This document shows positions 2,473-56,452 of a DNA stretch of 56,452 bases, in pieces (position 1 is the first letter of the stretch; every line of letters starts with the position of its first letter). The stretch lies in contig DF237531.1 of assembly GCA_000708835.1 (NCBI GenBank), positions 1-56,452 on the forward strand, in the 5' to 3' direction. This DNA is from Klebsormidium nitens. Its lineage: Eukaryota; Plantae; Klebsormidiophyceae. A program made the position numbers and the translations under genes. The notes beneath the pieces were generated by a model. It saw only the letters and a program-made list of their open reading frames with translations, searched no databases and had not been told where the DNA came from.

Positions 2473-5400
2473 GTCGGGACCGCCGTCGTGACCCGCCCTG
2501 ACGGCCGCCTCTCCCTCGGCCGCCTCGGCTCCCTCTGCGAGCAAGTCGAGGACCTCCTCTCGGACGGAATCGAGGTCATTCTAGTTAGCTCCGGTGCGGT
2601 CGGAGTGGGCCGCCAAAAGCTGCGTTACCAGAAGATGATTCACAGCACGCTTAAAGAGCTGCACCAGATGAAGAAGCACGAGCCGGACACGAAAGCGTGC
2701 GCGGCGATCGGGCAGAGCGGGCTGATGGCGCTGTACGATGCGCTTTTCGGGCAGGTGTGTTCCTTGCTTCAAGCTATTGTTTTCTCGCCTTTTTGTGCAT
2801 TTGCTCAGTGTTGTTGGGGATGCAATGGACTCTTCTGGCAGAAATTCGATCGTGGAGATTGTGCAGACTGATGACGCCACATGTTGCGCTGTAAGGCGAA
2901 TGCATATGTGAATCCGGTAGTGGCATCAATATCTGATCGACTTGCCAAACTAGAGTCGTTCAGCGAAGGTGGTTCAGACAGACACGCGTTGTTTCAACAG
3001 TTTCTCTTCGAGAACCCGGGGTGTCTTTTCGTTTCCGATCAGCGTTGCTTGGCAGAATCTTTGACATGGGTAAGATGGACTGGTTGAGCGAGTCTGTGCT
3101 TCATGACTTATACTTCTCAGGCCTCTGGTAGATATCTTTATCCGTTGGTGATCTAGTAGAGCTGGCTCATGATGGGGTGCGACGTTGGGCTGAACAATAG
3201 TCGCAAGACTGTGAAGTTTCCGAGCTCGTTCGTTGAGCCAGCACGGCAGCTTCTCGTCACTACCTCCAACTTCGGCCACGAGCACTTCACCAAAGACGGC
3301 GCCCTCTTGAACTCCGAGCGCACCATTGCTTGACCCAGTCTTTTTTCGCACCAAAATCCTCCTGTCCCTTACTGCACTTGGGCGTGGCGTGCAGTCAGCT
3401 CTTCGATTTTAACTCCGACTTCAGCAACCAGCAGCTCGGAAAAGACGGGGGTTTCGTCGGGTTCGAGCATACCGTCACTTGAACTGGCTACTAACCAACT
3501 TTGACCCGCATACCCCACCCGTACTGCAGTTGGACGTGGCGTGCAGTCAGCTCCTCGTCACCGACTCCGACTTCGGCCACGAGGACTTCCGGGACCGGCT
3601 GCGCGAAACCGTCACCGCTCTAGTTTCCAACAAGATCGTGCCCGTCTTCAACGAGAACGACGCCATCTCGACGCGGAAGGCGCCCTACAACGACGAGAGC
3701 GGCATCTTCTGGGACAACGACAGTTTGGCGGCGCTGTTGGCGCGGGAACTCGGGGCCGATCTTCTGGTGCTTCTGAGCGACGTGAGTCCGAACTGGCATG
3801 GTTTTGCCGCCCTTTCTAGTTGACAGCCTGGCGGCGCTGTTGGCACGGGAACTCGGGGCCGATGTTCTGGTTGTTCTGAGCGACGTGAGTTTGGGCTGGC
3901 ATGGTTTTGTCCCGCTCTAGCTGACCGTCTGACGGCGCTGTTGGCGGGGTGACTTAAAGGCCGGTTTTCCTGGTTCTTTCTGAGCGCTGTGAGTCCGAGC
4001 TGGCGAAACTTTCCTCCCTTTCTCGTTGTCGAGCGACTGTGTATTATCATCGAATGTCTTCATCCGATGGTTTTTATGAAGCTTTCGACCCCTCTTTCGA
4101 CCCGTTGCTCCTTGTCTTACCCAGTCAGTCTCTGCTTCTTTTCTTTTTTCGATCCTCAGTCATTTTGGATCTGCTCAGTTAGTCTCCTATGGTTGCCATC
4201 CGCTTTCCGGAGTCTCCCCGCAGGGGTACGTTATGAACCCAGCGTGGCCTTTTGCGAGCTTCTCCTGTGCTGAAAATGTTGCTCTACAATGGACCTTCTG
4301 AAGGCGCTGTCGAAAACTTTGAAAAGCTGGCGAGCTGCTTTTGGACGACGAAAGGGCGAGGAAAATACTGTTTCCCGCTTGGCAAGCTTTAAGCAAAGCC
4401 AGGAGTGGGTCCTTTCGAGATGCCGCTTTCCAGACCGCCTGTCAAAGAAAGAAGGTGCGCCCTTGCTCCCCTTTGCTGGGTAAGAAGAGAGCAAGGATGC
4501 GGCTATTCCTACAAGTTCTGCGTCGAGGTTGATTGGTTTGGTGAAGAACTTGAGACGAGTTCAGAAGCACGTGTTCGCGGATGCCGTGAGCGGATAATGG
4601 GCAAGGACCGCAAAAACATACCTCGTGAGGGTGCCTTTTTGACGACTTCAATCAGTATAAAACGCATGTTTGCGAACTTTTGACGCATTTTTAAGTACGA
4701 CTTTCATGTTGATAACAGCTCTGAGGGGCGAAGATGCGCCATTTCCTGGAGAGTATATTTTAAAGGCTCCAACAAACACACCATGCCTCCTCCGTTCTGT
4801 CTGGAATTCCGATGCGGAACATTCTTCCAGTCGATGTGTATTTCCAACAGTCTAAGTTGTTTCGATGTGTCTTGCCTCGTCCTGCAACAGTTTCCGTCCC
4901 TATAAGCACGTGGGAAGCCATTGAGTAAATCTACTTCGAACATAGTCAGATGCAGATAGCATTTTCCAGGCGGTCTGAATACTACAACATAACTTTGTCT
5001 ACTTGTCCAGCACGGCATTGAGAAAAGGCGATGAGGAACGCCCCTTCTGGCTTGCTTGTCTTGGCCAGGTCTCTGTCGGGCATACGAGGCCATTCTATTT
5101 GGTACAACATTCCCACCAGATTTCCAGACGCATCCTATGGAACAGAATAACATATTACTATGTTGATAAAGTCAGTTAAAAGTACGAGAGATTTGTGCCT
5201 AGGCAAGCTGTGCTCACACGGGCGCTTATGCTTACGCACTTCATTCATTTCGCATTGAGTCCTGAAGGGAGGGAACGGAAGGGAGGGAACGGAAGCTGGG
5301 TGCTACTAAACGGTGTGTTCGTCGACTTTTCCCACTTCCTTTTCAAACAAGCAGCAGATTATTTGGTGTGCTTATGCCCGTGTCTGAGCTTCAGCACTTG

Positions 5401-44737: not shown

Positions 44738-47340
44738 ATCCAGCAGTGCTAGCCGTTTGCAGCCCTGCGCTAGCGCCATCAGCCCTTCTCCGTCCAGGTG
44801 CTCATTTCCGCTGACGTCAACGTTCTCGAGGTTCGGACAACGCACGGCTAGCGTCCGGAAGTCCTCGGCCCGCAGGGGGCAGTCGCTGATGTCAAGCTGA
44901 CGCAAGGTCGGGCATGGCAACCCGGAGTCGAGTCTGATGAGGAAGTCATTGCGAAACAGCATCAGCTTCTCTAGCTTTTCGCATCCGTCGAGGACCTGCA
45001 GATAGAGATCCGTTTCAGAGAGGGCGTCCGCGGATGCATTCGTTATTGGCGACCATGAGTTTGGACCCTGTAGTAGTGGATTCAAGGGTAGTCTTTTGCC
45101 ATATCGAGGACGCAATGAAAGCTAGGCGGGTTCCTTGACAAACTAACGCCCACGCAACCACGTCACAGCCACCTGTACGGAAGGGCAAAGAGGGTGAGCG
45201 GTTTGATTACCCTCTGGCGGAGGCATGGCTGGTCTTACAGCTGGTGACTCGTCGAAGGTTTCCAGTTCGACAAGTGGGACTCTTTTGACTTCACGGGCGA
45301 ACATTACTAGAACAAATTTTCGGTGCCGTTGGGGAGCTTCGGTTTTGACCAGACATATGCTTGAAAACCTCAAGTCAAAGTATCTCCGATGTGTTGTTTC
45401 CTTCCTTGATGCTTCTTCCAGAATTGCATCCTGTTGCTGGCTCGCAAAGATTTCACAGAAATGCAAGCGAAATGCGAGCAGATCAAATGAACGCTGCGTT
45501 TCCACCTGGCCAGCTTGACATGCTCATAACCGTAAGAGGCATGCCTTCGCTATTTTCGGCACGTTTCAGAGCAAACAGGCTTGGTTGTAACAAAAGCACG
45601 GAGAATGAACACACGATTGGAAGGAGACGAGCATCAAGCCAGTAGATCTCGTTGACGAAAATCTTGAGGCAAATGATTCATAATGGAACTGCGATCAAGT
45701 ACTCATAGAAGGTAGACGCCCGGATTCATGAGCGACGAATAGAGGATGGAGACGCAAAGTTCGTGGAGCCAAAAAGTGTCCACATACGCTTTTAGGAAAC
45801 CAGGTACCGAGGGAAGGACAAGAGGGAAAACGGGGCTCAGGGACATTCTATAATTGGACGGTGCGAGGTGTGACTCACATCGGATAAGGCGACTCCGCTC
45901 ATGCAGAAGCCGGCGCCCGCCTCGAGTGATGTCAGAGCGGAGCAATGCAGCGCAATCGAATTCATGGTGCCATTGCCCACGTAGTCGCACTCACTGATGG
46001 CGAGCGTGTGCAGTTTTGGCCAGGGAGCGCCTGGGAAGTGAAGAAGAGTGAGTTCTGTTGAAAGGGACTGTTGTGATTCCCAAGAGGGACTTCAAGTTGC
46101 TTCGTGCGAGGCATAAGGGCTCATCAAATATTCGTTTGCAGCCAAGCTGGGGCAAACATTGAGGGATCTTGGAAAAGGCTATAAGCTCCTGGCGGCAATT
46201 CGGAAAGTTCGATTGCGTCATTGGAAACGGTCGTGTTTCTGGGTTGCGTGATTGTGGGTTGATCACGGCTTGTGTTGTCAACCTGGGGCCTTGTGATTAC
46301 TGAAGATTAGCCATGTGGGCTGGATGGAAGGTGCGGTTGGGCAGCTTTTATTCCCCCCGCCGGTTTTGTTGAGAGGAATACGTACTTGTCAAAACAGAAG
46401 CTCTCTTCGAACAGGCAAGGCGTTAAACAATACCAAGCCGATAAACGGAGCGAGCAAGCAACAAGCCCACCTTTTAGGAATGCCTTTTTGCGCAGGTTTC
46501 CCAACCCAGCTCTCTGGATCACGAGCTCCTCCAACTGCCCGCCTCTCAACTTTCCGAGCGACCGCAGTCCCTTGTCCGTCACGCGATCACACCCGCTGAT
46601 TCTGAGAACTTTGAGAGCGACGCCGGCCCTTGCTATTGCCTTGAGACTGCGATTGTTCAGTTCTGCGCACTCCAGCAGGTCAAGTCGGGTTAACGCTGAC
46701 CACGATCCCTCGCTAAGGCACACGTTCCACGGCACGTCTGGCTCCATCTTGCATTGGGTCAGGTCAAGCTGAACCAACGACTTTGAAAACCTTCCCGCAT
46801 TTTCCGGAACCACTCCCGGCTCAGCGTGTTCCCAGAGAGGTTTACCGAAGTCAGCTTCGTGCACTGCGCCAGCACGTGCGCAATGCCTGCTGACGTCAGA
46901 CCCCCCGCGGTGCTGACGTCATGCGCTGAGGTCACTTTTAGGCATGCAAGGGTCAGCTCCGTCAACCCCGGGCAGCGCCGCGCGACATTTAGCAAACCCG
47001 CGTCTGACACACCCTCGCAGAACGACAAATCGAGCGTAGTCAGGGTCCGGGCGCAGGGGGCTGACGTCAGCCCGTCCAAGCCGTGATCCGAAAGTTCGGT
47101 GGGCGCCCCGCAGTCGTGCAGCAAAAGCGCCCGCAGCTTTGTGCACGAATGCGCAATCCCCGTGACGGCCGAATCGAGATTCCAGGCGTCACTTTGACTG
47201 CCACTTTCCCCGCTTCCAAACGCACACTCGCGTGACTTCTTCCCGGACTCTCTTTTCCCCACTTCATCCAGCATCTCCGCAGACGCGGCGAGGAAAAACA
47301 TCAGCGCGTTGGTTCCAGTTGGTTGGCTTTGATTGGTCAA
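44738..47340 (-). CDS. RNI-like/F-box-LRR-type leucine-rich repeat protein, partial model, with a 1-nt frameshift at 46786-46789
   Basis: Exons (-) ~47274-46471, 46030-45879, 44995-44738. Cys-containing LRRs LTTLDLSFCEGVSDAGL, LKVLRISGCDRVTDKGL, LHTLAISECDYV, LRQLDISDC, LENVDVSGN. First and last exons unresolved; no F-box seen. Confidence 0.72.
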
Positions 47341-50264: not shown

Positions 50265-50680
50265 TTTCTGAAATTCATTCAGACTTCATTCAGGATCCTT
50301 CTGAATCCTGAATGTCTGGACCGGGGGACTGGGCCTTGGATCCGTGGGTTTGGTTAAGTTAAAGTATGGTCGGTCCGAGGTAACCGGGGGGGGCAGCCAC
50401 CGGAGGGGTTTCAGAAATTCAGGGTTCAGGAGAACCCTGAATGAACCCCGAATGAATATTCAAGGGGCATTCATTCGGGGTTCATTCAGGGTTCTTCTGA
50501 ACCCTGAACTTCTGAACCGAGGCCCCGCGGGGCCCGGACCGTCCCCCTGCGGCCACCGTGGGTTTCCAGAAATTCAGGGTTCAGGAGAACCCTGAATGAA
50601 CCCTGAATGAATATTCAAAGAGCGTTCACATTCGGGGTTCATTCAGGGTACGTTCTCCTGAACCCTGAACATCTGAACTG
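50265..50680. repeat. Tandem array of long hairpins (155-bp period, 48-bp arms) built from TTCAGGG/CCCTGAA motifs
   Basis: Unit 1 arms 50410-50457 and 50469-50516 pair at 46/48. Unit 2 spans 50565-50678. A degenerate right arm lies at 50268-50318. Confidence 0.9.
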
Positions 50681-50746
50681 AGGCCCCGGGGCCGGACCGT
50701 CGCCTGGGGCCATGGTTTGCATTTTGGTACCCGGGCCTGTTGTGAC

Positions 50747-51214
50747 NNNNNNNNNNNNNNNNNNNNNNNNNNNNNNNNNNNNNNNNNNNNNNNNNNNNNN
50801 NNNNNNNNNNNNNNNNNNNNNNNNNNNNNNNNNNNNNNNNNNNNNNNNNNNNNNNNNNNNNNNNNNNNNNNNNNNNNNNNNNNNNNNNNNNNNNNNNNNN
50901 NNNNNNNNNNNNNNNNNNNNNNNNNNNNNNNNNNNNNNNNNNNNNNNNNNNNNNNNNNNNNNNNNNNNNNNNNNNNNNNNNNNNNNNNNNNNNNNNNNNN
51001 NNNNNNNNNNNNNNNNNNNNNNNNNNNNNNNNNNNNNNNNNNNNNNNNNNNNNNNNNNNNNNNNNNNNNNNNNNNNNNNNNNNNNNNNNNNNNNNNNNNN
51101 NNNNNNNNNNNNNNNNNNNNNNNNNNNNNNNNNNNNNNNNNNNNNNNNNNNNNNNNNNNNNNNNNNNNNNNNNNNNNNNNNNNNNNNNNNNNNNNNNNNN
51201 NNNNNNNNNNNNNN
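50747..51214. other. Assembly gap (468 N)
   Basis: Run of N. Confidence 1.
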
Positions 51215-51272
51215 GCCCGCCTCCACCCGTCTTGTGTCTGCGATGCAGTCCAAGACCCATCAGAAAAGATCA

Positions 51273-54036
51273 CTACGTGCCGTAACCTTTTGTGAGCGCC
51301 CCTAGGAGCTCGGTGGTGATAAGGTTGTTTCGTTCGCAAGAGTGAAGAAGCCGGATTACGTCTTTGGTGGTTTTAAAGTGAGATCCTTTCGTGTTTCCTG
51401 TTGAGGGCTTGTTTGCCATGTTGTCTGGCTTGCTGAGCCAGCGAACGTTGTCAATTGTGTAGTGTCTAAGCGGATCTTTGCGGTCGAGTTGATATTCTGA
51501 TGAAGATTCGAGGGGCCAAAGTGGTAGCGCTCCGAGAAGAAGGTCGATGACGTAAGCGAATGCGAAGAAGGCATATTTATCCCGTTGACTTGAGATTTTG
51601 CCTTTTGGCATGTAGAAACCCTTCCACGCGAACGTAAGTCTTGTGGTCGCGTACGCACTGTCAAAGTGAACCCGGTTAATCAAAGACTCCCATTTCTCGT
51701 AAATGGGGTGATCCGTGTTCTTGACAACCATTTTTTTACCGTTCTTGTACTCTCTCAGTTTCAGAGGGCACATGTTGTAGACCGATGATTTGTATTTCAG
51801 GAGGCAAGTATCCAGGTTGGTAAGTGCGTTCTGTGTAAATGTGATGAATTGTGAAATGAGTGGAACGGAGGGATTTTTATACACGTCGGTGGCGTATAGG
51901 AATTTCGTGACGAGATAGTGTACCTGACTCGGGAGTTGGTCGTTTTGTACCAGTCCTCCGTCGGGTGCAGTGGTCAGGTCAGAATTGGAAACCGATGTCA
52001 CAGCGCGTGTCTGTGACTGTGTGAAGAAGAGTTTGCGAAAGCGCTTAGGTGCTTTTTTCAGTACGGAATTGCGTGGTGAACACGAGCCCCCGTGTGGTAG
52101 GCTGACCACAGAAGAGACGTTCGAGACTGCTCCGTCCTTGACAAAGGATGGATCGACTGGAAAAGTCATGTAACAAGTCAAGAAGAACGCGTGGATGTCG
52201 TTCGACTTAGAAAGACCTAAGGATTGCAGCGTTGCGACATCCGAAGAAAATCTTGTGATGGGCCGATTGCTGTATAGGTCCAAGCAAATCTGACTGCCTG
52301 CGAATTCGACTGGACGAGAGTACATTGCTGTCAGAATGACCAGCAAACCTTCAGTTGCTTTTTCCGAGGGAGTTTCAGAATTGAGATCAATTAGTAGACG
52401 TGTGTTTGAAGAGATTTCAAACATACTACGATAAAGAGATTCAAGGGGAGAGAGTTTACTTTCGTTCTCGTCGCGCAGGGAGCGGTTCTCTTCCTGCATG
52501 CTGCCCATGGCCGACTGGAGCGACCGCATCTGGTCCTCTTTTTCATGCTGCGCCTGCATCAGCTTGGCCACGTCCTCTTGCAGCGACTGAGTGAGTAGGG
52601 AAAGTCTGTGCGTCTCATCATTCTGTCCCTTCTGTGCGTTCTCTTGCACAAGAGCCTGAAAGTTCACGGCAGGGATATTGCCGGGAGTCTGTTGAGTTTG
52701 GCTGTTGGGGCGGGCTGCGTCCGTTTTGGCACCCGCGGCTTCGGGGTTAGGATTCGGTGCGGTCAGCTGCGTGGGCTTGGCCGTGTTCTCGAGAGGGGGA
52801 GGATTCGCGATCGGGGGGGGGGGTTGGCTTGTTTCTGACCCCGGATTCAGCTGGGTTTGTTTCTCCGTAGGCTCCAGGGGTTTCATTGACCTGGGCCTGC
52901 CACTCCTTGTGTCTCGCGAACGCCTTCGATTGACGAACTGCTTCTCTGGCTTCCGTGTGGCCCAGGAGGCACTTGGTGTCAAAAACGCACTTCTCTTTGG
53001 GGGTGTGGAAAGCTGGGCACGGCCTTTCCGCCTTGGGTGCATGCGAGAATTTGCACGCCGGGTCGGGGCATGGTTTGTCCTGAGCCGTGTTCACACAGAG
53101 TTGTGTGAACTCGCCCTTCACGGTGGTGAAGTAGGGCATCACCTGCTGCCTGAGGACGGGGGGTTTCGGCTGCGGTTTGTCGTACGGTGTGCCCGGTTGG
53201 GCGCGGTTGCTGCCGTTCTTCGGGGTCTGCACACGAGGGTGGTTACGGATTGGACCGACCGGGTTACTGTTCATCCCGGGTGGGTTTCGAGGGTTCTGCC
53301 ATGCGCCTGGTCCGTTTCTCTGCGCTGGTGTGAACTGGTTTGAGTAAGAGGGCCTCCCGGGTGGATTCTGCGGTGGCGGGGTATAGGACGGGTTAGGACC
53401 TGGGTTGACTGGTTGGACCGGGTACAGTTCAGTTCTCTGGGCTTGCGGAATTGCGTTACGACCCCAGGTTGGTGGTCCGCTCAGGTTCCCGGTGGATCCG
53501 TGTCCAGGGTTTTGCCATGTCGATTCCGTTCCCCATCCCTGGGGTTGGTTTCCCCAGGAGTGGTTGGGTTTGTGGTAACCGTTGTCCGGAGGGTTAAGGG
53601 GTGGGTTGGTGTAGGTAACCGGGGGAGGGGCCGGATGCTGTGCTCCGTGGGGGGGGGTAGGATTGGCTCGGGGGGGGCGGCCGGGGGTTGGTAAGGAGGG
53701 GGAGCGGAGAAGTTATACGTTGGTTGGGGGGGCGCGTTAGCCGGTGGGGGAGGTCCAATGACGTTGGGGTAACCCTGTGCCTGTGGCGCAGGATATTGCG
53801 CCACAGTGAAGGGTCCCTGCTGGGGAGGGGCTGGGGCTGGGGGGGGTGGGAGAATGGGTTGTGGTGCTGGCTGAGCCGCGACCGTCGGAGCCGCGAATGT
53901 TTGAGCGTAGACGAAGGTTGTTGTCGGCTGTGGAGGACGGTGCGGCGGGGATCGGCGCGGATGGCGGGGGCTGTTGTTGCTGAAACGGTGACGTCATCAT
54001 TGCGTAGGCTGGAGTCGCGTACGTGTAGGGCAGCAT
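51273..54036 (-). CDS. ORF2 of the retroelement (~920 aa if three homopolymer frameshifts are corrected): Pro/Gln-rich N-terminus, 2x CCCH zinc finger, coiled coil, C-terminal HNH-like nuclease
   Basis: Joins ORF pieces 54036-~53945, ~53945-~53670, ~53670-~52820 and 52820-51273. Fingers C-x8-C-x4-C-x3-H and C-x9-C-x5-C-x3-H at 53096-52957. HPIYEKW...LDRKDPLRHYTIDNVRWLSKPDNMANK at ~51710-51410. Confidence 0.7.
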
Positions 54037-54067
54037 GTTTCCTGTGACAGAAAATTGGGTTAGGTAA

Positions 54068-56176
54068 TCACAGGTTAAGTTTTTGCTTAAGAGTATATTG
54101 GAAAATGAGTTCAAGGTCTTTCTTGTTACCCATGAGTCTCGGATTGTAAACCTGGGTGTTGAGAAAGCGGGAAAAGGTGAATATCAGTTCGTTTGTAGGA
54201 TAGTGTTTATACTTGATTAGATAAGCTGCAACTTCAGCAACGTTTTCGAAGAAGCCTTCCGAGTGTGTATTCAATCGGAAGAGCCGTACAATTTCTCCGT
54301 AGAAGGAAGAGATTGATTGAGCCCTGCAGACATTAGAGGCGACGTCAGGGAACCGGTTAACAAAGAAGTTGTAGTTTTCTCGTTTGTCATGAAGTGTGAC
54401 ATGTACGTTGCCCTGGAGGTCGACGTAGATCAAAGTGTCCAGCAACTTGCACTGCAAGATACGATCTGGATGTGGTTTTACTTTGTTAGGGATCAGTCGA
54501 ATGCCTGATTCTGGGGGATAGATGTCCTGGTACATGGTTTGGAAGTATTCAGCGTTTGCTGAGCCGAAGTCATCCATGTACCTGAAAATAGAGTATTGCA
54601 GAGAATGCCATGGGTACTTTTCGACCCATTTCCGTTCGTGCGCATGGCATGTGAGATTAGCGAGAAAACCGCTTGAGTGCCCTCCTTGGGGAATCCCGTT
54701 GACCTGATGGAAGAGAGCATTTCCTAAGCTGACGTAGGAATTCTTCACCAGGAATTCAAGTAGGTTTAGGATGTTCTGGATAGGATAAACCACACCTTTA
54801 CTGCAATATTCCTTTTCGCTAGGAAGAGATTTGGTGGTCGGGTCAAGGCCTGACTCAGAATCAAACCAGGTTCCGTTGTCTATGTTGTTGCCTAGACTGG
54901 TGTCGCCTATGGCTATGAAGAAAGAGTCTGCACCCACGATGTTGGCTGCCCGTATTATTTCTTCCTGAACTTGAGCTATTACGTTCTGCTGGTCCATTTT
55001 CTGGTACATTGAATCGATGTCCGATGAGAACATGTTGACCAGGCATTCAGGAAGTGAGAGAATAATATCAAGACTGTTTTCGACTATCCAATATTTTCGA
55101 ATCCTGGTTGCTTTGAATTCGGCTTCATGAAAAGTTCGAAGACTTTGCATGACGAGTGAAAGAGCTTCGGTGAGGATTCGTTGAGGGAGATTAAAAATGG
55201 AGCGATGGGTGGCGGCGACTGGCCGCCAGCCCATTGGAGTTTTATGTGGTTTAGGCAGCGTATAAAAGTACGGGACTTCATCTGTTTCGTTTCGGAGAAG
55301 CGCTTCCAGGTGAGTGTGATGAATTAAGCCTGAGATTTGGTTCGCGAGAGAGGCGACCAGATCGTCTTTTGAGGTGTTGAGTCGTGTATACTCTGGAGCG
55401 TTATGTAACGTGATGATACATTGCTTAATATAGAGATTTTTACAGATGACGTAGTAGTTTCCCCTGCATTTATCTGCTGGGAGGATTACATACTTCTGTA
55501 GGAACGAGTCTAGTTCTTGTTGATGTTCTGCAATTCTGCCGGGAGCTGGGAATAAGAGAGAGTTAAGGTTCATTTCCTTGTTCGTATTCTTCTGTAGCAA
55601 GTCTTTCACGTTGTCGTCAAAACGTGAGAGAAACTTTCTGATCCATCTGTGGGCATCAGGGTTTCGTTTACGGTTCACGAGCTCAGTGAAGGCATCTTTC
55701 AAGGCTTCCCGTGCCAGTTTGGAGTCTCCGTTTGTAGTCTCTCTAAACATTGGACCTCGTTTGAGCCTGTCTAGGATGGTTGGGTTCGAGATAATAGCTT
55801 CCAGGTTGCCACTTGCCAAGTGACCTTCAAAGCGAGATTCGTGAATATGTTCTTTCTGACAGTGACATGCTTCGGTGTAAGCATGAAACTGTGGGATTAT
55901 GTGATCTGTCCATAGGTTGAAGTCAACTCCGTCCAGAGTTGCTTTGTACTGTGATTGGTTAAGTTTTTGCGGTGGCTCAGGATAGAGCCATCTAATCTGA
56001 AGATTTTCATAAGGACATAGGTAATCTAACTCTGATTTGATCTTTCTGATGTCTATGAGATTGAACCATTGGTTTACAAACGGGACAAGTAACCATGGTG
56101 AGTTTGGATCGGTAGCTTTCCGATCCGACTGATAGTATAAGAGTTTATCTCTTTGAGTGCATTGAAACTTTTCCAT
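54068..56176 (-). CDS. Penelope-like reverse transcriptase, 702 aa, no endonuclease domain in this ORF
   Basis: RT motifs YTLPKPHK..MGWRPVAA, FSSDIDSMYQ, QVNGIPQGGHSSGFLANL and FRYMDD (54580-54569). PLE-like thumb LLDTLI..HDKR..RFP..S..GEIVRLFR..YP. N-terminal linker PFVNQ..LIDI..I, CHC (55867-55859) and GH.ASGNL.II.N..L.RGP.FRE, as in N-terminal-EN (Naiad/Chlamys) PLEs. Confidence 0.9.
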   Translation of the reverse strand: MEKFQCTQRDKLLYYQSDRKATDPNSPWLLVPFVNQWFNLIDIRKIKSELDYLCPYENLQIRWLYPEPPQKLNQSQYKATLDGVDFNLWTDHIIPQFHAYTEACHCQKEHIHESRFEGHLASGNLEAIISNPTILDRLKRGPMFRETTNGDSKLAREALKDAFTELVNRKRNPDAHRWIRKFLSRFDDNVKDLLQKNTNKEMNLNSLLFPAPGRIAEHQQELDSFLQKYVILPADKCRGNYYVICKNLYIKQCIITLHNAPEYTRLNTSKDDLVASLANQISGLIHHTHLEALLRNETDEVPYFYTLPKPHKTPMGWRPVAATHRSIFNLPQRILTEALSLVMQSLRTFHEAEFKATRIRKYWIVENSLDIILSLPECLVNMFSSDIDSMYQKMDQQNVIAQVQEEIIRAANIVGADSFFIAIGDTSLGNNIDNGTWFDSESGLDPTTKSLPSEKEYCSKGVVYPIQNILNLLEFLVKNSYVSLGNALFHQVNGIPQGGHSSGFLANLTCHAHERKWVEKYPWHSLQYSIFRYMDDFGSANAEYFQTMYQDIYPPESGIRLIPNKVKPHPDRILQCKLLDTLIYVDLQGNVHVTLHDKRENYNFFVNRFPDVASNVCRAQSISSFYGEIVRLFRLNTHSEGFFENVAEVAAYLIKYKHYPTNELIFTFSRFLNTQVYNPRLMGNKKDLELIFQYTLKQKLNL

Positions 56177-56452
56177 TGGATCAGCATGCTTTGAGAGAAG
56201 CAGAATTAATGTTCAAACCTTAGTGAGTAGGTTAGGACTAACCTCTTACTGAAGGCTGAGATCAGAGGAGAGTGACTGAGGTCTTCTTGTGATGAAGAAC
56301 TCTCCAGAAGATTCCCAGCAGTTTGGAGTCTTCGGCTGAGGTGGTAGACAGAGTCCAGGACAGTGAAGACTGTTGAGAGGAAGAGGGACTGCCGTCTATC
56401 TGAGGAGAGGTAGAAGCAACAAACAGTTAGGTTTCTGTTGTTGAGTGAAGAG

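Follow-up and report, generated by a model that had tools for sequence, protein, structure and literature searches.

Eukaryotic retrotransposons are classed largely by the enzyme that stands beside their reverse transcriptase (RT): an AP or restriction-like endonuclease, a DDE integrase, a tyrosine recombinase or a GIY-YIG nuclease. Here we describe an element from Klebsormidium nitens (assembly GCA_000708835.1, contig DF237531.1; the whole stretch of 56,452 nucleotides that was analysed is called the window below). We read it, with somewhat better than even confidence, as a two-gene Penelope-like retrotransposon in which the HNH domain of the second open reading frame (ORF2) replaces the GIY-YIG nuclease for the priming nick.

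The closest described systems are the Naiad and Chlamys types of Penelope-like elements (PLEs), whose diagnostic features are CxC, a DK motif that lacks the conserved G, and an IFD placed between RT3(A) and RT4(B) (Craig et al. 2021, PMC8557442). Especially close are the PLE-X elements of Chara and Selaginella, which lack an endonuclease (EN-less). They share with the K. nitens element a green-lineage host, CxC, a DK motif lacking the conserved G, a long A-to-B spacer at the IFD position, an organization in tandems and pseudo-long terminal repeats (pseudo-LTRs), 5′ truncation and the absence of GIY-YIG, and they insert genome-wide or into ribosomal DNA (PMC8557442). By contrast, PLE-X as described carries canonical hammerhead ribozymes and an N-terminal CxCX1-8C extension, neither of which we found in the K. 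nitens element, and its describers report no HNH ORF, whereas the K. nitens element has one. For PLEs that have CxC but not GIY-YIG, the mode of integration ‘remains to be seen’ (Craig et al. 2021, PMC8557442).

A mechanistic precedent is provided by the proteins encoded by group II introns, in which an RT is joined to a His-Me/HNH nuclease that nicks DNA to prime synthesis. These proteins differ in being bacterial or organellar, in forming a single polypeptide with a canonical His-type HNH, in acting through ribozyme-mediated reverse splicing and in belonging to another RT lineage. Beyond group II introns, we found no HNH or His-Me partner of a nuclear retrotransposon RT described in the literature searched. 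The KolobokP elements are likewise eukaryotic transposable elements with an acquired His-Me finger gene resembling homing endonucleases, but they are DNA transposons with a DDD/E transposase and no RT (PMC9587614). An earlier note on this DNA had been unable to place such an RT–nuclease pairing among the described PLE clades, and its view stands: the same literature yielded no PLE with an HNH nuclease.

The HNH-like domain of ORF2

The earlier note had recognised the pattern of phage HNH endonucleases in a peptide lying within 51400–51715. This peptide, which runs from HPIYEKWESLINRV to NMANK, is present as residues 445–545 of a 589-amino-acid frame (51408–51710, minus strand), and matches in PHROG, hhalign and BFVD searches, all well beyond chance, bear the pattern out. 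The last 175 residues of the frame match four PHROG families of HNH or restriction endonucleases (E = 1.5e-6 to 4.2e-5). We aligned 28 diverse relatives of the domain, with identity down to 23% (alignment A1); 23 of the 28 matched phrog_3377, 18 matched phrog_8790 and 16 matched phrog_374, with best E-values of 5e-11, 3e-12 and 1.9e-14, respectively. A tblastn search of phage genomes found the annotated HNH endonuclease of Staphylococcus Kayvirus phages, and in hhalign the A1 profile matched the HNH endonuclease encoded by Staphylococcus phage MCE-2014 (96% probability, E = 2.4e-9), with 100 aligned columns that begin at the HP..Y..W helix and take in the DR...Y...N...RW...N..N core. Homologues of the 589-amino-acid frame were found at 50–70% identity, an exhaustive search returned 102 relatives, and a metagenome scan with a narrower alignment of the domain gave no confirmed locus.

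Homology to the phage HNH family with the signature HPxYxxW...DR...Y...N...N (YP_009097994; phrog_3377, 374, 2081 and 8790) is supported across the whole core, and the spacing of D, R, Y, N and N is identical. The phage proteins differ in being free-standing, about 200 amino acids long and equipped with RC/Cys-containing motifs, whereas in the element domain those cysteines have been lost and an insertion separates the HP helix from the DR strand. Judged from sequence, the ORF2 domain is thus a predicted member of this phage family, with an active-site layout that appears to match that of PacI.

Structure prediction pointed in the same direction. The beta-beta-alpha-metal fold that the earlier note had expected appears in an AlphaFold model built on A1 (predicted local distance difference test (pLDDT) 79), in which strands 103–107 and 119–123 and helix 124–130 make up a beta-beta-alpha core. 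The model thus has the predicted core of the His-Me finger superfamily, a beta-hairpin and helix with the Asp and Asn metal-ligand positions (D106 and N127) conserved. In an exhaustive structure search (VIA) of 48,161 solved chains, only six reached a Z of at least 2. PacI ranked second (3m7k_A; Z 4.1, 88 residues, root-mean-square deviation 4.7), and the third and fourth ranks went to the C-terminal domain of Tcd, whose depositors call its fold His-Me/HNH and most like Cas9 HNH, McrA and PacI (PMC13139853). A second structural comparison gave Z 4.2 over 92 residues for PacI chain 3ldy_A, with model residues 8–134 aligned to chain residues 9–124. PacI is therefore the best-matching nuclease among solved structures, at a weak Z of about 4 that we treat as consistent with relatedness. 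Foldseek against BFVD returned seven phage proteins at E ≤ 1e-3 (best 6e-5) and more phage matches beyond that threshold, several across the list being named HNH or homing endonuclease, and the nearest shapes in the ESM Atlas were Uroviricota proteins with NUMOD, I-HmuI, AP2 or Endonuclease VII domains.

Eight residues (H31, D74, G90, D106, R107, H113, Y114 and N118, in domain numbering) were invariant in all 28 sequences of A1, and R43, G61, P93, N127 and N130 were kept in at least 90% of them. Counted from D106, the offsets are +1 for R107, +7 for H113, +8 for Y114, +12 for N118, +21 for N127 and +24 for N130, so that the proposed spacing of D, R(+1), Y(+8) and N(+21) holds at D106, R107, Y114 and N127. 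The catalytic residues of PacI are Arg93, Tyr100 and His42 (PMC13139853), and one Asp and one Asn coordinate its single metal, while a Tyr of the omega-loop takes the place of the catalytic His as general base (PMC4081073). Arg93 and Tyr100 agree with the PacI numbering in the earlier note, which would add D92 and N113. PacI (PDB 3LDY/3M7K; group 20 of the His-Me fingers, Jablonska et al. 2017) has the same replacement of the canonical His by Arg and uses Tyr instead; it shares with the element domain this Arg, a Tyr seven residues later (R107 to Y114, as from Arg93 to Tyr100) and a conserved upstream His. From the overall range of the alignment, H31 is a candidate equivalent of His42.

The likeness has its bounds. 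PacI is a restriction enzyme of 142 amino acids, of which 88–92 aligned, whereas the element domain is the C-terminal part of a retrotransposon protein of about 900 amino acids; the Asp-to-Asn spacing is 21 in the element, and for PacI it would be 21 by the numbering in the earlier note. Single-sequence and profile searches of PDB sequences detected no similarity to PacI. In its predicted active-site layout the domain resembles PacI, yet it is not a member of the PacI family by sequence or by zinc sites.

The domain is under strong purifying selection. Its reading frame is intact across eight copies, 5′-truncated insertions included, and the ratio of nonsynonymous to synonymous substitution (dN/dS) is far below 1: dN was 0.08–0.43 with saturated dS, and the only unsaturated pair gave an omega of 0.047.

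The reverse transcriptase and its linkage to ORF2

The open reading frame listing gives two large minus-strand frames in the window, of 702 amino acids at 56176–54068 and of 589 amino acids at 53042–51273. The 702-amino-acid ORF1 gives only a weak RVT_1 match in Pfam. RTs of PLEs carry the motifs GxKF/Y and DKG N-terminal to the RT core, and in the Naiad/Chlamys clade CxC precedes GxKF/Y. When it was aligned with close and distant relatives, CxC, G..FR (GPMFRE), ADKC, PKPHK, motif A (SSDIDSMY), motif B (NGIPQGG) and YMDDF were found to be conserved; CxC takes the form CHC in the window and CHC, CPC or CIC across close and distant copies, and the DKC region reads DKA in the distant copies. Motifs A and B are separated by about 100 amino acids, a spacer that may correspond to the IFD. 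A model of the RT was of mediocre confidence (pLDDT 65.7), and its top 12 Foldseek matches in the PDB were all telomerase TERT (best E = 3.4e-5), ahead of a group II intron RT (E = 0.08) and LINE-1 (E = 0.66). Look-alikes of ORF1 in the ESM Atlas were PLE-type clusters: rotifer, arthropod and basidiomycete ones with HTH_animal, DUF8422 and RVT_1, and one cluster combining GIY-YIG with RVT_1. These data support the identification of ORF1 as a telomerase-related, PLE-type RT of the Naiad/Chlamys type.

The canonical PLE nuclease, which the earlier note had named as GIY-YIG, is not detectable here: no match at E ≤ 1 was obtained in the window RT, in its close homologues or in the N-termini of the distant RTs. 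One possibility is that the conserved N-terminus of the RT could be a vestigial GIY-YIG, with which its predicted strand–helix order is compatible. RT residues 1–100 (55870–56176, minus strand) contain conserved RD..LYY, WLLV, VN.WF..ID, CPY and RW.Y, among which no catalytic residues are recognisable.

We found that the RT is followed by ORF2 in the close copies L001, L003, L004 and L009/L010, whose RTs are 60–76% identical to that of the window, and also in the environmental contigs L005, L006 and L007, whose RTs are 36–38% and ORF2 C-termini 22–32% identical. The consistent linkage on which the earlier note depended is therefore seen in every full-length copy examined, including three contigs with RTs only about 36% identical. 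Throughout, the HNH-like domain is fused to the same protein with CCCH fingers and a coiled coil. ORF2 of the distant clade either overlaps the RT stop or lies directly against it, an arrangement that suggests that the two genes may be translated in a coupled manner. The ORF2 start overlaps the RT stop at 1079 in L005 and at 1002–1009 in L006 (UGAUG, or an 8-nt overlap).

The features of the element in the window, from its 5′ to its 3′ side, are as follows.

56177–56452, minus strand: partial 5′ untranslated region (UTR), ended by the window edge (at the DNA level, 75% identical to the sequence that precedes the RT ORF in related copy L003)
54068–56176, minus strand: ORF1, Penelope-like RT of 702 amino acids, intact and without GIY-YIG (weak RVT_1 match, motifs, telomerase structural matches)
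52813–53688, minus strand: N-terminal part of ORF2, Pro/Gln-rich with two CCCH-type zinc fingers, in a frame that differs from the rest in the assembly (tblastn with intact homologues P0001, P0002 and P0013; weak zf-CCCH Pfam matches on the ORF at 52747–53274)
52803–52843, minus strand: zone of a single +1 frameshift that splits ORF2 in the assembly (frame change between reverse-complement positions 3640 and 3699)
51273–53042, minus strand: main ORF2 frame of 589 amino acids, comprising a coiled coil, a middle domain with no assigned fold and the C-terminal HNH-like domain (ORF listing, homologues)
51276–51800, minus strand: predicted C-terminal PacI/phage-type His-Me finger (HNH-like) domain of 175 amino acids, conserved core 51408–51710 (PHROG, hhalign, AlphaFold, PacI Z, BFVD, invariant residues, dN/dS)
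51215–51263, minus strand: conserved 3′ motif directly after the ORF2 stop, with CTGATGNG, a covarying stem-loop and an invariant GGGTGGNGGNGGG tract, clipped by the assembly gap (same motif in L001, L002, L004, L009, L011 and L013)
50747–51214, no strand: assembly gap, a located run of 468 N, exactly where the terminal direct repeat of 1.2–1.5 kb starts in related copies (66 nt past the ORF2 stop in L001, L004 and L009)

Because the window edge cuts it on the 5′ side, 276 nt upstream of the 702-amino-acid ORF, and the run of N on the 3′ side, starting 58 nt after the stop of the 589-amino-acid ORF, the window copy is incomplete at both ends. The window holds no second copy of the element, and the repeat sequences of the related loci are unrecognisable beyond the gap. 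Smaller minus-strand ORFs lie between or overlap the two large ones, one Pro-rich (53804–53481) and one with the weak zf-CCCH matches (53274–52747).

In intact homologues ORF2 is a single frame (P0002, 733 amino acids; P0001, 914 amino acids), in which a Pro/Gln-rich region, two CCCH-type fingers, a coiled coil, a middle domain without a recognisable family and the HNH domain follow one another. The part with the CCCH fingers and coiled coil matches the K. nitens protein P0013, annotated as C3H1-type, and an ESM Atlas feature search with ORF2 residues 195–589 gave no usable match. In an independent DNA run (X5), one contig is a single base shorter at 52809, and the contigs of a further run (X1) break at 52803–52843; the ORF2 frameshift may therefore reflect either an assembly error or a variant in the window copy. 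Single bases at 53647 and 53670 are likewise missing from the same independent-run contigs. Over window positions 51216–56452, run X5 shows about 119 C>T or G>A differences and almost nothing else, and looks like bisulfite-converted data.

Past the gap, 50300–50746 holds a complex array of direct and inverted units of about 150–320 bp that contain TTCAGGG or CCCTGAA. Farther downstream of the element, leucine-rich-repeat-like ORFs in F-box/LRR style (46307–47340, minus strand) are probably an ordinary host gene.

Copies, repeats and a conserved 3′ hairpin

Several copies of the element are incomplete or arranged in series. L002, L011, L013 and L014 are 5′-truncated and have no RT, and L005, L007 and L013 contain tandem units; the RT start recurs downstream of ORF2 in L005 and L007, and the tandem period of L007 is 5,656 bp. 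Direct repeats of 1.2–1.5 kb that are 96–98% identical flank L001 (3442–4646 and 9905–11112), L004 (7075–8570 and 13813–15844) and L009 (4722–6240 and 11191–12591), and in each the 3′ copy begins 66 nt beyond the stop of ORF2. L013 shows a truncated ORF2, then the repeat, then the 5′ UTR belonging to the next unit. Because of this arrangement, we conclude that the direct repeats behave as pseudo-LTRs that arise from partial tandems, a described hallmark of PLEs (PMC8557442). No TG..CA repeat ends were seen at L001, L004 or L009. The copies sit in transposon-rich DNA, as their neighbours include a PIF/Harbinger-type DDE transposase (L004, 5623–6843) and a Ty3/gypsy RT fragment (L014, 2032–2604).

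Directly after the ORF2 stop, the close family shares CUGAUGNG, a covarying stem-loop, the invariant tract CGGGUGGNGGNGGG, two nucleotides and AUCAG (L001, 9848–9912; L004, 13750–13819; L009, 11135–11197; L002, 7455–7511; L011, 11065–11128; L013, 10819–10883). A 7-bp outer stem, CUGAUGA/UCAUCAG, spans the repeat boundary, and its seventh pair covaries as A-U, G-C and U-A; with an inner covarying stem it encloses an invariant 13-nt G-tract (GGGUGGNGGNGGG). The repeat start falls inside the 3′ strand of this hairpin. Across the six sequences, 89.7% of cells were paired, as against at most 61% in slid controls; compensatory changes occurred in 5 of the 13 pairs, and none of 500 shuffles reached the observed covariation score. 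The window retains the 5′ half and the G-tract directly before the gap. The hairpin and G-tract were not found in the same form in the distant L005–L007; L006 (~3505–3525) and L007 (~3720–3740) share a different motif after ORF2, CCTGAT(G/A)CGTGATGGCACAC. A reading of the CUGAUGAG-stem-C motif after ORF2 as the half-core of a canonical hammerhead was rejected, as GAA is replaced by GGG and A9 is a G in two copies.

PLE RTs initiate internally on their own RNA (PMC11167929). Speculatively, the G-tract and hairpin might form a programmed RT stop, a template-switch site or the end of an RNA; the constant boundary of the pseudo-LTRs would then be accounted for.

Proposed mechanism and its alternatives

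In the mechanism that we favour, the ORF2 protein would bind the element RNA through its CCCH fingers and multimerise through its coiled coil, and its HNH domain would nick chromosomal DNA. The 3′-OH exposed at the nick would then prime reverse transcription by ORF1, with the HNH domain standing in for the GIY-YIG nuclease of other PLEs. The 5′-truncated and tandem copies are signs of target-primed reverse transcription. The homologies, the gene order, the conservation and these truncated and tandem copies are well supported. We give about an even chance to the broader proposal that the element represents an old and distinct PLE lineage that lost, or never had, GIY-YIG and mobilises with a PacI-type nuclease of viral or phage origin, joined to a gag-like protein with CCCH fingers and a coiled coil that is encoded downstream of the RT.

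Several points weigh against an HNH nuclease that primes a PLE. The earlier note had proposed a His-Me nuclease on a separate ORF for target-primed reverse transcription; the domain and its linkage have held up, whereas the nuclease activity and priming role of ORF2, like its RNA binding, are what we infer. Single-sequence and profile searches of Pfam, NCBIfam and PDB sequences with the domain gave no match (the Staphylococcus phage HNH protein itself likewise has none in Pfam), Foldseek of the domain model against the PDB gave no meaningful match, and the Z-scores for PacI are low. The canonical catalytic His at the end of strand 1 is replaced by Arg (R107) in 28 of 28 sequences, and the PacI-type Cys4 zinc sites (two per subunit) are absent, with no conserved Cys in A1. 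The assignment of ORF1 to PLEs draws on motifs and structural look-alikes. Neither target-site duplications nor a target consensus were seen at the full-length copies L001, L004 and L009, and no Rfam hammerhead was found in the window or in L001–L007, even at E ≤ 1, whereas most PLE clades have a hammerhead in the terminal region and the published EN-less PLE-X have a canonical one. The window ORF2 contains one frame change near 52809 by tblastn with intact homologues, and no RNA contigs covering the window copy were found, which is no proof of silence.

The Arg in place of the general-base His and the missing zinc sites could also mean that the domain binds nucleic acid but is catalytically inactive, like SMAD MH1 and the Tcd C-terminal domain, and that primers come from breaks, chromosome ends or a host nuclease; inactive His-Me folds are documented, and EN-less PLEs exist. 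We consider this unlikely, because the residues that stay invariant down to about 23% identity are those with which PacI performs catalysis and binds metal (D, R, Y, N and the upstream H), whereas the cited dead His-Me domains have lost them, and because the copies examined are interstitial, beside ordinary genes and other transposons. An active nuclease might instead serve another step, such as second-strand cleavage, the processing of tandem cDNA or structured junctions, or homing-type double-strand breaks repaired from element copies. PacI and many of the phage relatives indeed cut both strands or act in homing, the coiled coil could serve for dimerisation, and the conserved hairpin with its G-tract lies exactly at the repeat boundary. 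No further nuclease is detectable in the element for the priming nick, however, and the 5′-truncated copies fit nick priming followed by incomplete reverse transcription, which leaves this explanation distinctly improbable in our view.

We hold it very improbable that the element is an LTR-type or otherwise new retroelement, with the 1.2–1.5 kb repeats as true LTRs and the G-rich tract as a polypurine-like primer site for the plus strand, even though in three of three full-length copies the repeats start 66 nt past the ORF2 stop, directly after the invariant G-rich tract, and the members of each pair are 96–98% identical. Integrase, RNase H, protease and tyrosine recombinase were not found, the element likewise departs from LTR retrotransposons in gag, in TG..CA ends and in target-site duplications, and its copies are 5′-truncated or tandem. 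Moreover, the RT is telomerase-like with PLE motifs, and pseudo-LTRs formed by partial tandems are typical of PLEs. That ORF2 is a passenger, either a selfish homing-endonuclease gene or one captured from the host or a virus, and irrelevant to retrotransposition, would agree with its closest identifiable relatives being phage homing-type HNH proteins. We find this scarcely credible, as the domain is always joined to the same CCCH and coiled-coil protein, downstream of the RT even in lineages with RTs 36% identical, as ORF2 overlaps or abuts the RT stop in the distant lineage, and as purifying selection is strong.

If an HNH nuclease does prime this PLE, the element would add a new RT–nuclease pairing to the classification of eukaryotic retrotransposons and would represent nuclease swapping in a retroelement, in which the incoming domain apparently has its nearest relatives among phages. 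A compact RT with a separate nuclease could also interest builders of retroelement-based insertion tools. For the question that Craig et al. (2021) left open, the element is a concrete and testable candidate; if the reading is true, it would explain how ‘EN-less’ Chlamys-type PLEs of streptophytes integrate within chromosomes.

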